Source: Bugula neritina
Taxonomy: Eukaryota > Animalia > Bryozoa
NCBI GenBank assembly: GCA_964035545.1
Contig: OZ037767.1
Coordinates: forward strand, 11,356,581-11,420,580
Direction of reading: 5' to 3'
Length of the DNA: 64,000 nt
Below, piece by piece: positions 55,690 to 61,359 of the stretch. Numbering within the stretch: position 1 is the stretch's first letter; each line of letters starts with the position of its first letter. Both the position numbers and the translations under genes were made by a program. The notes below the pieces were generated by a model. It had not been told where the DNA came from, did not search any database, and saw only the letters and a program-made list of their open reading frames with translations.

Positions 55690-58600
55690 ATGCCACGATT
55701 TACTTGGAATAAACTCAGAGAACATATATTTCTCTTCCTCTGCTTTAGCTTGGCTGGTAAAACTTACTCTATAGCTACATGTACATAAGTGCTACAGTCA
55801 CTATATACTTAGGGAGTAGTTTTATAATGAAAAGTTGTAATCAAAGAAATGTTTACTTTCCTAAACTGTCTAGGTGCTAGTTATTTATTGTTATATTATC
55901 AAAAGATGTTAGAGTTCCAGCTTAATTATAAGTTGGCAGGAAACTCAGCTTAAGTGGCCTTAGATAGCTACAGTTGAGTTTTACAAGGACATAGCTACAG
56001 TTGTGTATCCTTATTTTATTAACCTTGATCTCTGATTACTGACTGTTGGCTGTTGAAATGAATATTGCTCACATTTATGCAGACGGAAAATGGTATTCAG
56101 ATAAAGCTCACTTGTCTGTCATTGGAAAAGACGAGAATCAGGAAAGTAGTAAAATCATTTTCCAGTTGAGTTTTCCAACGACATGGGCCACATATGACAG
56201 GTAACTGCTAAACCGCCACCACATAATACTTGTTATATATAAGTTATATGTGCGTGTGTGTGTGTGCGTGCGTGCGTGCGTGCGTGCGTGCGTGCGTGCG
56301 TGCGTGCGTGTGTGTGTGTATGTGTATATATACACATAAAACTCACACAAGTTTATAGTCACCATCCTGTGAGAAACCCCTGGTGGAAAAGTTATTTTTG
56401 TAAAGTGGCTAAAGGATTTTATCATAATAAATATGGCAGAGAAGCAATTATGACTTTAATTTTCATTATTATCTGTTGACAGATCTAGTCTACTCAAACA
56501 CTTTTTCTGTTGTGCAGTAATTAAAATAATATTGATAATTTCGCTTATTTTTCTGCCTTCTGCTAACTTTACAAGTAAATTTTTACTCCTCTACAGTTTA
56601 CCAAACTCCTTGTTTAATTGGTATAATTAAACCATTCAGGGCAGGAAACTCGAAAGCTATTTTAGTCTTTTTACCTATTAATTCAATAAGTTTTTTTTCA
56701 GAACTAGAGTGCAAAGAGCACTTCTTTGTTAAGCATATATATAAGCCCTGCAAATCTAAAAGTTCAATTTTGCCACTCTGTTAAACTATCATTAATTTGG
56801 AAATATTGTTGGCTTATTAATAAGTGTTTAATAACACGTTGTATTATTTTTAACAAGATAACAGCAGATTTATCTGAAAAGTACTAAAAGCAATTTTATG
56901 ATAGGAGGTGCGTAGCTTTTAAATTATTATTGATGTTGTAACAATTAACATTGCACAAAGTGGAAAAGTACAAAAAGAGAATAAATCATTGTTCAATACC
57001 TTAAGTTAGTTATCAACAAAACTATATGTAAGTGTTTTTTCTTCCATAGCAGTTGAAGACTGGTAACCTGTTAAATTTTACCTTCAGGTTCAGCTTTCTT
57101 GTTGAACTTCAAATGAAGCACAGTGGTGGAACATTCTCATTCATAGAGTTGGAACCAACTTGTCAAACAACGGGACGTCATACCTGCCCAGCCCACGATT
57201 TTCGAGAATATCTAAAATCGGTAACTGCAACCACCTTCTGTATTTAAAGACCATATCTGTGCATTTAAATTGTTTACAGAAGTATTTACAGTATGATAAT
57301 GGCAAATTCATTTTATAAAACAATAAATATATGCATTGTTTGTCTAATTTACAAAACTATAACTGCTAATATATCAGTTTTTAGTTTAAAACCAACAAAT
57401 TTACAAAAAAAATCATAAGAAAGTCTTTTTCAATTTTAGTTTCATTTTCTGCATATTTTTCAAGTTTTCAAAGAAAAGTCATACTTGAGTTTTGATGATT
57501 TAAATTAAAAAAGTCACTAGTATGTAAAATTTAGCACATTTTCTCTATAATCTGCTAAAAATAGCACAGCTTTTGTTGATTCAGATGAAATATAAACTAT
57601 ACTAAGGTTTTTATTTAGTGTATAATACATATAAGTCAATAAAGGTCCTTCACTGCCCAAAATCACATTAAAGTAATTGATATGGGACTTAACTACACTT
57701 TATTTCTGCATGGCTGCTTTGTTGTATTTTCTTATACTTATACTCATAACCAACATGAAAATGCCACCACTGTTAGATATTTTATGAATTTTAACCAGTT
57801 TCAACTTGTGTGCAATAAAACTGAGTATAATTCATCAGTTATACTCATAGACTGTAAGATGGAAAGTTTTAATAATAGAAAGTTTAACTATTAGGCCATC
57901 TGTAATTTCAGTCCCGAAAATTATCAGGGTGCTTCTGGTACAGTCAGTGTTATGGAGACATCATGGTGAGCACAGTGGTCATCAATCACAGTGGAAAGTA
58001 TTCGTATTGGAACTCGAAATCGTTTATTGCCTTACTACATCGAGAGCAAGTCACACACAAAAGTAACCATGTCTGGGGTGTTAAAAAAACTAGTAAGTTC
58101 TTGTGGCTTAAATAAAAGGTCCATGATTATAGGTAGAGGTTTTATTGAACTCCTACACAGACCGCTGCGAAAAACTTAGCACTTCAGAATCTTTTTCCAA
58201 TTATTTTTTCGCCCATTAACTTCAATCAGTTTTGAGTTTCTGGAAATCACAACTAATATTTCGAAACGAAAGGGCAGTAAAGACTCTAGTCAACATAATG
58301 TGTGTGGCAGATAACTCCAACAATGTGTTTTTACAGTACACATACACATAGTATGGTGTGCGCATGTATATATAATGAATGCTTGTTTTTTCTGAAAAAG
58401 AACTTTTTATTTCATTGCTTTAGTAATAAAGATTTGTACAAAAAACTACTTTTATAGCAACTTGTGGTGAAACCTTTTATGGAATAGTTTTTGGCGATTA
58501 TATAACAGAAGCAGAATCAATCCTCGAGGAAAGTAAGGTAAAGTTGTATACTTGTAAGGAATGCTAGTATTTCAACAGTCAAGTTTTAATATCTTAACTA

Positions 58601-61359
58601 GAACGCATTTTGTGTTTTTTTATAAAACAATGAAAGTCATTCTGGTGTGGTGTATAATATGACTTCAGAATGTTAGAGATTGCTCCGATTTATCTTTATT
58701 GCAAAGATAGATTTGTACATCTATCATATATTATAGATATTTATACTCTATTGCATATGTTGCTTCACAGGACAAATTAAAGTGTAAAAATTTTGAACTA
58801 TGACAAAAAATACAAGTTCTATAATCCTTCAGTGTTTGTACAAAATTGCAAACATAATTGTAGATATTTGGTAAAAGATAGGTTCTGTTATTATCTTATC
58901 ACTATAAGAAACTTTAGCTAAAAGTTTATAATTTAAAATTAGGCATAATAATGTTGTTAAAAGTTATAAAGCATTAGAACTTCCAGTTGGAAATTTTTCT
59001 CTGCTGGTGATAATTGTATTATATGACCAAAAAGCTTCATTACGGGATTCTTAAAGCTACTTTCAAGTCTGTATTATAACTTCTTTTTAAATGCTGACTT
59101 TAAAAATTTAAAAAGAGAGTAGCCGTGGTCTAGGGGTTAGAGCGTTTGTTTAATAAGCATGAAGTCATGGGTTCGAGCCCAGACAAAGGTCATTGGTGAT
59201 GTTGGGAAGAGTATCCAGTCATTGCTCCTGTGCCTCATTTAAATAAGTCCTTAGCCTGCTTTAACAAAAACCCCTTTCTGTCAGGGGTTTCTCACAGGGG
59301 TAGTGACTATAAACTTGTGTGAGTTTTTTCTAAGTTTAAATAGCTTATAGAACTTAAGCTTTTTTATAGATGTTTTCATATCTCGTCATAATTATGTAGG
59401 ACATCATTTGGTACAATACATCCACAATTTGCTTATGGATAAAAAGTACAAAAGTTAACAGGGATGATAATGTAGAAACTAGCATAATGACTACACAACC
59501 TATAGGAGATACATATCAAGAGTAAGTCCACAAAGTTATTTTGATTAATTATAACGCTTAACCAAATATAGTTTTAACCAAAAATAAAGGATCTTATGAA
59601 ATAAATACCTTCCCAGCCAAACAAGCTGATTTTACGTTTAAAGTCAACAGGTAAAAGAAAAATTAGTGTCTTTTATCATATGTCAATAGTAGCTTGTTCC
59701 AATACTGCAGCTTTCATCATTGGGCCTACTTTTCTCATTACGGATATAAAAAAATTGATTTCTTCACAGTAAATTTTGTTGAATTGGAACAAATCATAAT
59801 GAAGTGTTATTATTGAAAACCTGATCATTGTGAAACAGAAGTTTTATTGAACTTGATATAAACTGTGAGCTGCTTGTTTTAAGGAAAAAATCATTCCAGT
59901 AAAAGCAATAATGAATGCTTATCAACAACATTTAAAAATAAATTATCTCAAATAATGCTAAAGATTGGTTTCTTTCTAAAAATAAAGTTTGGGCATTTTA
60001 GTAAATTGCTGTTTAAGTGTTTAGGCTTTTATAAAATATGGCATTACTTCATTTTTAAAGGTTCCAACTGAACCAAACAGTTGACAATGTTTTGTGATGT
60101 TCTAGGTATAGCGTTGCACTGTTTCTAAAAGATAATTATAAGAATTTGACGATGAGAATTCAAAGGAATCCACCTTTATTTCAGCAACTAGACTTTTATT
60201 CTAAATCCCGATACAATTGGAAGTTATTAAATAAAGATACAGAGTGGCACCTTCTGTGTGTCACCTACTACATCTCAGCAACTTTTTTTGCAGACGTGAG
60301 TAAACACACACCACACACAACACAACGCACAACACACAATACACAATACACAACACACAACACACAACACACAACACACAACACACAACACACAACACAC
60401 AACACACAGCACACATACATTAACTTTAATCTTTATCTATCAGCTTAAGATATATGTGTAATCTGTATAATGTGTGAATTTCACACATTCATTACTTCTG
60501 AGCGTCTCTATATTTGACCTCACCCCTCTATATTGATATGCATTGCATGCGTCCAATAACATATTATGTAAAACTAGTTACTAAATGGTGAGTGATTTGA
60601 CGCAAGGCTGGTGATGAATATGAATGAAATGTTAAAAGCCAAAACGAACACACATTGTTATTGCCACTATTCACTTGAATAGCTTTACAAAAAGCATTTT
60701 CTCTGACTTGCCTGCTTTATTTAACTTTGTATCCATTTTTACATAAAGGCAAATGAGTAACAATACTACAAAATATTTTTTTAAATCTTCAATCTAATTT
60801 ATATGCTCCCACAGATAAAGCACACGAGTGATGATATTTATGCTTCATTTTCAGAATTGAAAGTTAATTTAAAAGTTCTTAATATCTTTTTCAGTTTGCA
60901 GTAAAAAAAAGACAAATTAAAACAGTTGATTATGCAAGGAAGAGCTTTATTGTTAATTCACTGAGCATCTGATTATATGAGATTAAAATCTTGAGACCCT
61001 CATGACATTTTAAGCATTAGGATTGGTAGTTTTTTTTGGTATTCTCACCGATTTCTCCTGAGTCCTGACTTTGGCTTATTTCAAAGAGTAATAACTATAG
61101 ATTTTTGACATAAAAGATAAGTCAAGGTTTTGATTAATTGATACAGCTTTACAGTCTAAATCACATGAGTCAACGCTTTGTACACATCTATATCTAATGT
61201 ATTAAAATTTTTGAAAAAGAATTACTAAAAACTTTTTATTACAGTTTTCTATTTATTTTGATGGGAGATTCATGGATGCAAAAAGTATCCTACTACAAGA
61301 TTACTTATTCAGAACGCCTGAACCTCCTTTGCCATTTAAAATAGCTAGCTATGGACTAG
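55690..61359 (+). CDS. Paralog of the pentraxin-Ig receptor, exons 1-8 (gene continues beyond the window)
   Basis: Exons 55690-55756, 56044 (or 56083)-56200, 57088-57220, 57912-58092, 58458-58537, 59400-59521, 60106-60295 and 61245-61359 have the same phases as the 7896 gene and the same lengths, except exon 5, which is one codon longer. No stops; introns partly alignable. The homologous exon-2 acceptor reads AC rather than AG. Confidence 0.8.
59114..59330 (+). mobile_element. tRNA-derived SINE (best-preserved copy in the window)
   Basis: A box tggtctagggg, B box gttcgagcc, central ggtgatgttgggaagagtatccagtc, 3' end gactataaacttgtgtgag. Absent from the homologous intron of the 7896 gene (~12460). 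Confidence 0.8.

Follow-up and report, generated by a model that had tools for sequence, protein, structure and literature searches.

The DNA at positions 55690-61359 (+) of the window (the whole analysed stretch of 64,000 nucleotides from Bugula neritina) holds the first 8 exons of a longer full gene, and probably makes up the 5' two-thirds of the second gene in a tandem pair of co-oriented paralogs restricted to bryozoans. That "probably" is a joint judgement on our whole explanation, in which tandem duplicates are under purifying selection, carry near-neutral patches and have undergone gene conversion. Because the patches change at close to the neutral rate, we read the pair as ordinary paralog divergence with gene conversion, with no demonstrated hypervariable recognition system. 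The elements of this gene (copy 2) and of its tandem twin in the same orientation (copy 1, window positions 7896-39057, +) are listed below, with nucleotide differences between the copies.

55690-55756 (+): copy 2 exon 1, ATG and signal-peptide-like hydrophobic start, aligned to copy 1 exon 1; GT donor, phase 1 end; 16/67 nt differ
56083-56200 (+): copy 2 exon 2, N-terminal domain, from the copy 1 alignment; 7/118 nt differ
57088-57220 (+): copy 2 exon 3, holding patch A (57113-57139), from the copy 1 alignment; 21/133 nt differ
57774-58092 (+): near-identical tract of exon 4 plus ~140 nt of upstream intron, at about 10605-10923 in copy 1; likely gene conversion
57912-58092 (+): copy 2 exon 4, from the copy 1 alignment; 5/181 nt differ
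58458-58537 (+): copy 2 exon 5, with the opening segment of patch B in its 3' part (58499-58537); a one-codon indel distinguishes it from copy 1; 21/80 nt differ, the 3-nt indel included
59400-59521 (+): copy 2 exon 6, with patch B ending in the initial 9 nt, from the copy 1 alignment; 16/122 nt differ
60106-60295 (+): copy 2 exon 7, encoding a core strand that bears W-H-x-L-C-V-T, a motif shared by pentraxin domains; 26/190 nt differ
61245-61359 (+): copy 2 exon 8, containing patch C1 (61266-61358); GT donor at its end; 28/115 nt differ
61360-64000 (+): start of copy 2 intron 8, with microsatellites and a young high-copy transposable element (63000-64000)
L004:622-795, outside the window: copy 2 exon 9, its part of patch C2 at L004:622-698
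About L004:6400-6561, outside the window: counterpart of the transmembrane exon in copy 2
7896-7962, 8420-8537, 9864-9996, 10743-10923 (+): copy 1 exons 1-4
11999-12075, 12518-12639, 13164-13353, 20931-21045 (+): copy 1 exons 5-8
14066-18019 (-): Ty3/gypsy-type retrotransposon pol ORF of 1317 aa, antisense in copy 1 intron 7, with RT, RNase H and integrase domains
31228-31401 (+): copy 1 exon 9, its first 77 nt (31228-31304) being patch C2 and the remainder 88-100% identical to copy 2
33648-33745, 34529-34664, 36288-36422, 37004-37122, 37387-37538 (+): copy 1 exons 10-14, two putative Ig-like modules, named from motifs only
38907-39057 (+): copy 1 transmembrane exon, encoding 23 hydrophobic residues and then a short tail that ends in a stop; putative junction to exon 14

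We rebuilt both gene models over exons 1-8, and the AG/GT borders and phases of copy 2 agree with those of copy 1. Since exon 8 ends in a GT donor in open phase, copy 2 continues past 61359, where it had been taken to end; exons 9-14 and the transmembrane exon lie outside the window, and the gene extends ~9 kb beyond the window end. At least 14 exon pairs are intact in both copies, with identical phases, canonical AG/GT sites and no stops. The duplication is collinear, includes the introns (72-81% identity where alignable) and reaches beyond the window. The retrotransposon in copy 1 intron 7 accounts for a large share of the difference in length between the copies, and the element at 63000-64000 occurs in at least 40 copies of 96-99% identity. 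The exon 4 and exon 7 peptides each match exactly two places in the 216 Mb genome. The original prediction was right that the copies are tandem paralogs, and its suggestion of a receptor cluster comes down to two genes.

The copies differ most strongly in three patches. Patch A (aa 71-79, exon 3) differs at 7/9 aa, patch B (aa 181-196, the end of exon 5 and the start of exon 6) at 12/16 aa, and patch C (aa 305-361) spans exon 8 and the first half of exon 9. Within patch C, the exon 8 part (C1) differs at 12/31 aa and the start of exon 9 (C2, aa 336-361) at 19/26 aa, the latter being the most divergent segment of all; identity in exon 9 is 55-65% in the 5' part and 88-100% in the 3' part. When the 115 replacements were redistributed over the mature protein, the 12 found in the densest 15-aa window were reached in 0.02% of shuffles (P = 2e-4), indicating clustering. 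For patch A, a gapped nucleotide alignment suggests a possible compensated frameshift, and this source of divergence is possible for that patch only. The four peptide strings quoted in the original prediction were all found in the window on the + strand, and its hand counts for exon 8 (28/115 nt, 13/38 aa) and exon 4 (5/181 nt) proved exact; the strong divergence that it placed at the exon 5-exon 6 junction corresponds to patch B. Its description of exons 2, 3, 6 and 7 as well conserved needs correction for exon 3, where conservation is uneven and patch A lies, and for exon 6, which differs at 10/41 aa. The pattern of variable patches in a conserved frame is real, with the densest patch in the first half of exon 9, not in exon 8.

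We estimated dN/dS pairwise between copy 1 and copy 2, with codon statistics on the coding sequence joined from window coordinates. Over the whole gene the ratio is 0.33; it falls to 0.20 when the patches are left out and rises to 0.86 within them. Purifying selection acts on most of the protein, and three short segments gained replacements at a roughly neutral rate. Patch B reached 4.3, which is not significant (Fisher P = 0.12), patch C2 1.07 and patch C1 0.42; in this pairwise test no patch is significantly above 1. The original prediction had named a dN/dS not above 1 in the patches as refuting diversifying selection, and exon 8 (0.40) and the 15-aa window first singled out (0.43) both fall below 1. 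In fully neutral simulations at K = 0.25, windows with 12/15, 20/26 and 31/57 replacements arose in 36%, 3% and 66%, respectively, and they were commoner at K = 0.30-0.35. The 26-aa window is marginal (P = 0.03) at this lowest neutral rate, which we count against our own explanation; we count likewise that two sequences alone make relaxed constraint and positive selection inseparable. A further point against it is that the nonsynonymous divergence of the patches (0.345 per site) exceeds the gene-wide four-fold divergence of 0.209 (Fisher P = 0.003, uncorrected for the post hoc choice of patches). The paralog pair is real, and positive selection on it is unproven.

The low divergence of exon 4 had been taken as a sign of the conserved frame, but a conversion tract explains its contrast with the patches better. 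In this exon 0/21 four-fold sites differ (P = 0.007), and over the whole tract 12/159 intron and four-fold sites are mismatched, where 22% would be expected (P = 9e-7). In intron 3 the identity of 93-100% continues for ~140 nt and in intron 9 for ~60 nt; the 60 nt after exon 9 hold 2 mismatches. These near-identical tracts cross exon-intron borders and have diverged flanks. Four-fold divergence is uneven among exons (chi-square P = 0.02), as in exon 4 (0/21), exon 11 (1/20) and exon 7 (7/15). Exon 4 and its upstream intron have been homogenised, and interlocus gene conversion is the likely cause; the same probably happened to exons 11-12 and to exon 9 at its 3' end. The conserved intron flanks could instead be splicing signals, a point against our explanation. 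The conserved block of intron 9 is unique to both copies and matches no Rfam family, and we rejected it as a transposon or known RNA. Copy-1-like variant alleles were also rejected as a sign of ongoing conversion, since about half of SNPs are expected to have an ancestral, copy-1-like non-reference base.

The encoded product is predicted to be a type I membrane protein. It would comprise a signal peptide, an N-terminal domain, a jelly-roll of strongly diverged pentraxin/LamG-like type, a pair of Ig-like modules, a single transmembrane helix and a short tail. Domain names outside the pentraxin-like half are putative and taken from motifs alone. In exons 10-14 we found C...W/F...Y-x-C type motifs by eye; searched singly, these exons gave no Ig-type family match in Pfam, a weak test given that single exons are half-domains. 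The pentraxin-like identity of the middle domain is itself weak. Pfam hmmscan of both copies, exon by exon with E up to 10, gave no usable match. Six-frame searches of the whole genome placed PF00354 at 21 places, none within the window, and Laminin_G_3 at other loci only. In a local hhalign comparison with nine real pentraxin domains, aa 276-388 aligned over the C-terminal half only (probability 53%, E = 1.3e-4, score 36.5); the highest of 40 shuffles scored 24.2 and the reversed sequence 13.4. The template domains themselves match neuronal pentraxin-1 (E = 4.5e-39). The earlier label of a pentraxin region thus stands on a profile score above all 40 shuffles and lacks a family model match.

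Exon 7 reads W-H-L-L-C-V-T-Y-Y in both copies, against W-H-H-L-C-V-T-W-S in a real pentraxin (P0004). Of the pentraxin signature H-x-C-x-S/T-W-x-S/T, the C and T are kept and the H and W replaced. The acidic residues of the Ca-binding loop (G-Q-E-Q-D ... D..Q) on the ligand face are absent; in the weak profile alignment their place, in patch C2, is taken by basic and hydrophobic residues, which are not the same in the two copies. The largest patch overlaps in this alignment the loop that bears the ligand/Ca site of real pentraxins. An exon 7 profile had no match among PDB sequences, nor had exons 7 and 4 in the ESM Atlas. In an exhaustive search of representative proteins the profile found a distant exon-like ORF (P0002, Logan contig L008) with about 40-55% identity over two short matched stretches of exon 7, and no other exon was recognisable. 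The match to the multi-pentraxin protein P0004 was confined to the W-H-x-L-C-V-T motif, and three further profile matches were spurious.

Several other histories could produce these patterns. The original prediction invoked diversifying selection at jelly-roll loops, where the paralogs, and possibly their alleles, would recognise partners that differ between them or change fast (self/non-self, gametes, symbionts, pathogens) while conversion keeps the scaffold uniform. We consider this possible but rather unlikely. The clustering of replacements (P = 2e-4), the dN/dS values of 4.3 in patch B and 1.07 in the exon 9 patch, a patch dN about 1.9x the gene-wide four-fold divergence, the drop in identity within exon 9 and the alignment of the densest patch with the pentraxin ligand/Ca loop all argue for it. 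However, no patch is significantly above 1, exon 8 lies at 0.40-0.43, neutral simulations reproduce the windows, only two genes exist, the pentraxin Ca-ligand residues are missing from both copies, and the patches were picked after the data had been seen. Allelic data speak on both sides. One DNA run (X1, contigs) contains exact contigs of copy 2 and a variant haplotype that differs by 2-2.7%, in introns and exon 7 alike; this variation of about 2% appears ordinary. Two of the five non-synonymous variants listed sit in patches A and B. The more specific proposal of a bryozoan recognition receptor, with a pentraxin-like head lacking a calcium site, loops aa 181-196 and 336-361 under positive selection and a scaffold kept uniform by conversion, appears quite doubtful.

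The patches might also be a relic of history, if the duplication were older than it appears and repeated conversion had overwritten most of the gene, leaving the patches as segments never reached. NG86 dS of 0.54 in the patches against 0.27 elsewhere, values of 0.9-1.0 in exons 1 and 13, and the uneven silent divergence with near-identical tracts spanning exon borders are consistent with this. It is nevertheless very unlikely, given that clean four-fold sites differ similarly in the patches (2/10) and the rest (36/174), that the alignable introns are fairly uniform at 72-81% across the gene, and that the non-patch dN/dS of 0.20 indicates real constraint beyond recent copying. We regard it as extremely unlikely that the second copy has died, goes untranscribed or is an assembly artefact such as an uncollapsed haplotype; the one point in favour is that no RNA run was found to contain the stretch. 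All 14 exons are in frame with every splice site kept; a neutral copy would stay stop-free over 606 codons with P < 0.001, and its chance of retaining every one of the 52 splice-site bases is about 0.001-0.002. The introns are ~25% diverged, transposon insertions differ between the copies, and exact-match contigs occur in the sequencing run.

We therefore return to duplication followed by retention of both copies, with purifying selection over most of the protein. Both have been kept functional since the duplication, which the silent divergence of about 0.21-0.25 per site marks as not recent. Interlocus gene conversion would homogenise exon 4 and the upstream intron. The three divergent segments may be loops at the surface, either tolerant of change or altered in specificity from one paralog to the other, and the largest would take in an insertion together with the loop where true pentraxins hold the ligand/Ca site. 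The contrast between frame and patches is largely due to conversion and constraint lowering divergence in places and near-neutral drift raising it elsewhere.

Compared with known pentraxins (NP1/NP2, PTX3, CRP/SAP; PF00354), the C-terminal half of the middle domain has the same order of W-H-x-L-C-V-T strand, Y-F-D-G strand, loop and strand-helix. It differs in lacking a Pfam Pentaxin or Laminin_G_3 match, in a genome where this search detects 21 other pentraxin exons, in an insertion of roughly 19 aa, and in belonging to a type I membrane protein that also carries Ig-like modules. The pair resembles Hydractinia Alr1/Alr2 (PMC9546547) and Botryllus fester (PMC3549757) in that a colonial marine animal has tandem genes for type I membrane proteins, whose membrane-distal region is variable and which include Ig-like modules. 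What defines those loci is extreme allelic polymorphism, a large number of members and genetic linkage to fusion/rejection (PMC9546547; PMC3549757), whereas the bryozoan pair comprises two genes with ~2% allelic difference (one run) and no significant omega above 1, known from sequence alone. The evidence gives a common evolutionary pattern and does not show the undescribed system first proposed. In the literature, no paper ties Bugula to this gene or to bryozoan pentraxins. To our knowledge, no recognition or immune receptor has been characterised in bryozoans, and for this reason the gene pair, two diverging paralogs for a putative, undescribed membrane protein that has a pentraxin-like head, is a reasonable candidate to keep listed. 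The practical value lies in the corrected gene models, with copy 2 a complete gene leaving the window, and in showing that divergence peaks at the start of exon 9. If the positive-selection receptor reading were true, the pair may serve colony self/non-self discrimination or symbiont recognition.

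In a self-comparison of the window (C3:11356581-11420580 of the 216 Mb genome of origin), positions 55552-61514 align collinearly, introns included, to 7722-21190 in the same orientation at 66-88% identity. The two tandem paralogs are called here copy 1 (7896-39057) and copy 2 (from 55690 past the window end). We aligned the copies exon by exon and set the exon borders by AG/GT signals and phase. The counterparts of copy 2 exons 1-8 all lie in copy 1 within 7896-21045, and every peptide quoted in the original prediction was found at its place in the window.

Exon models of copy 2 (window coordinates, strand, feature; all from alignment, AG/GT and phase)
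55690-55756, +, exon 1
56083-56200, +, exon 2
57088-57220, +, exon 3
57912-58092, +, exon 4
58458-58537, +, exon 5
59400-59521, +, exon 6
60106-60295, +, exon 7
61245-61359, +, exon 8

Copy 2 extends past exon 8, because this exon stops in mid-codon at a GT donor. In the 40 kb of downstream sequence examined (L004), copy 2 stays collinear with copy 1 31201-39271, and six more exon pairs (exons 9-14) are stop-free and equal in length and phase between the copies. The final exon of both encodes 23 hydrophobic residues and then a short tail. At the 3' end of exon 14 (37511-37538) the best donor gives phase 2, and the transmembrane exon (38907) requires phase 0; either a weaker donor 27 nt upstream, which would fit, is used or a small exon is missing, alike in both copies. 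Microsatellites lie just 3' of copy 2 exons 2, 7, and 8 (56242-56349, 60305-60414, and 61392-61560) and at matching positions in copy 1. The peptide of exon 4 matches exactly two places in the 216 Mb genome, as does that of exon 7.

The two copies carry different intron insertions. Copy 1 intron 7 holds a Ty3/gypsy-type element in antisense orientation that is absent from copy 2 and whose 1317-aa pol ORF (RT, RNase H, and integrase; 14066-18019, minus strand) is intact. The greater length of copy 1 is mainly due to this element and to its 10-kb intron 8. Copy 2 intron 8 contains a different, young transposable element at 63000-64000, running on into the downstream sequence, with at least 40 copies of 96-99% identity on at least nine chromosomes, some as inverted partial pairs. 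The copies are therefore distinct loci rather than haplotypes of one locus. Within copy 1 intron 8, 22000-26000 has a GC content of 47-51% against a background of ~30% and short ORFs only; it is probably another inserted element. A repeat with 83-94% identity is common to copy 2 intron 8 (62110-62442) and the spacer 3' of copy 1 (44652-44859 and 45732-45878). An intron 9 block of ~300 nt (31700-32000; L004:~950-1250) is 85% identical between the copies, with no other genomic occurrence, Rfam family match, or coding pattern. It may represent an alternative exon, an element that controls splicing, or a tract of gene conversion.

Selection maintains both copies. A neutrally drifting copy, given its own share of the divergence, would keep 606 codons stop-free in fewer than 1/1000 trials and all 52 splice-site bases with P of about 0.001-0.002.

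The hand counts behind the original prediction were exact (exon 8, 28/115 nt and 13/38 aa; exon 4, 5/181 nt). The 115 replacements in 606 aligned codons fall in clusters, with 12 in the densest stretch of 15 aa, a density equalled in 0.02% of shuffles.

Divergence patches between copy 1 and copy 2 (positions in the spliced protein model)
A, aa 71-79, exon 3: 7/9 aa differ
B, aa 181-196, exon 5/6 border: 12/16 aa differ, plus a one-codon indel
C, aa 305-361, exons 8-9: 31/57 aa differ
C1, part of C within exon 8: 12/31 aa differ
C2, part of C within codons 1-26 of exon 9 (copy 2, L004:622-698): 19/26 aa differ

The predicted patches are thus real and clustered, but the hottest segment, C2, lies beyond the predicted interval (55690-61359), and its copy 2 version is also beyond the window. 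A compensated frameshift is an alternative reading for patch A only.

The patches in exon 8 and at the exon 5/6 border had been attributed to diversifying selection on a ligand-binding surface. By the Nei-Gojobori method, the whole gene gave dS 0.318, dN 0.104, and dN/dS 0.33, with 0.20 outside the patches and 0.86 in all patches together (dS 0.54, dN 0.46). The dN/dS was 0.43 in the predicted 15-aa window, 1.07 in C2, and 4.3 in B (Fisher P = 0.12); in this pairwise comparison, no patch differed significantly from 1. Nonsynonymous divergence in the patches, which were chosen post hoc, is 0.345 and exceeds the gene-wide four-fold value of 39/187 = 0.21 (Fisher P = 0.003). We also evolved the whole mature coding sequence free of constraint at three values of K (0.25, 0.30, and 0.35). 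The observed density of 12/15 was reached in 36%, 73%, and 95% of these simulations, respectively, that of 20/26 in 3%, 17%, and 50%, and that of 31/57 in 66%, 98%, and 100%. The patches therefore match the expectation for weakly constrained or unconstrained segments. With a dN/dS of 0.40 in exon 8, no patch significantly above 1, and neutral simulations that suffice, the claim of diversifying selection was not supported; positive selection on the patches is compatible with the data but is not required by them.

Silent divergence is heterogeneous among exons (P = 0.02), with four-fold differences of 0/21 in exon 4 (P = 0.007), 1/20 in exon 11, and 7/15 in exon 7. Through the last ~140 nt of the intron that precedes exon 4, identity stays at 93-100%, and it falls to 20-50% immediately after the exon; in this tract 12/159 intronic or four-fold sites are mismatched versus 22% expected (P = 9e-7). 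Beyond the exon 9 donor, there are 2 mismatches in 60 nt. Interlocus gene conversion is the likely cause at exon 4, and probably acted at the 3' part of exon 9 and at exons 11-12 as well. The contrast between patches and frame is therefore partly the product of homogenised tracts such as exon 4, besides the constrained protein frame to which it had been ascribed.

A search for sequencing runs that contain the stretch found one of DNA and none of RNA. For allelic variation, we used the matching contigs of the DNA run. They include exact copy 2 matches and a variant haplotype whose introns differ by 2-2.7% and whose exon 7 differs by 2.1%. At least eight exonic variants are listed, of which five change an amino acid, two of these within patches A and B; the amino-acid-changing variant at 58000 probably stems from the collapse of a contig with copy 1. 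At several sites the variant haplotype has the base of copy 1. This is expected where the reference allele is derived, so we rejected it as a conversion signal.

No Pfam family matched any exon searched, and the Pentaxin and Laminin_G_3 models matched other genes of the genome but none at the pair. An exon 7 profile was searched exhaustively against 1.84 billion representative proteins. Its only outside relative was a distant exon-like ORF (135 aa) on an unrelated 2.2-kb Logan contig of SRR25569774 (match at L008:531-695), with ~40-55% identity across two short matched stretches; no further exon of the gene was recognisable on that contig. A nine-domain pentraxin protein matched at the W-H-x-L-C-V-T motif only. 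Given such scant relatives, the family looks lineage-restricted. The nine domains of that protein are true pentraxins (neuronal pentraxin-1, E = 4.5e-39). When the two-copy alignment was compared with them by hhalign, aa 276-388 paired with the C-terminal half of a domain (probability 53%, E = 1.3e-4, score 36.5), whereas 40 column shuffles peaked at 24.2 and the reversed sequence at 13.4. In this alignment, part of C1 sits in a ~19-aa insertion relative to pentraxins, and C2 lies opposite the strand and loop bearing the pentraxin calcium/ligand site. Unlike pentraxins, the pair is without the acidic ligand residues and does not show the signature. The "pentraxin region" of the original prediction is thus weakly backed by a profile alignment above all shuffles but not by a Pentaxin model match. 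From sequence, "pentraxin-like jelly-roll" seems a fair descriptor of the domain, short of family membership; the Ig-like and N-terminal domains are putative, motif-based labels.

Overall, the predicted observation was confirmed and extended, and its interpretation was borne out only in part. That the proteins serve in recognition, their loops being under positive selection, is possible, though rather unlikely. The pair is best read as an ordinary, selection-maintained tandem pair encoding an undescribed bryozoan membrane protein, its genes homogenised by conversion in some tracts and evolving near neutrality in the loop segments.
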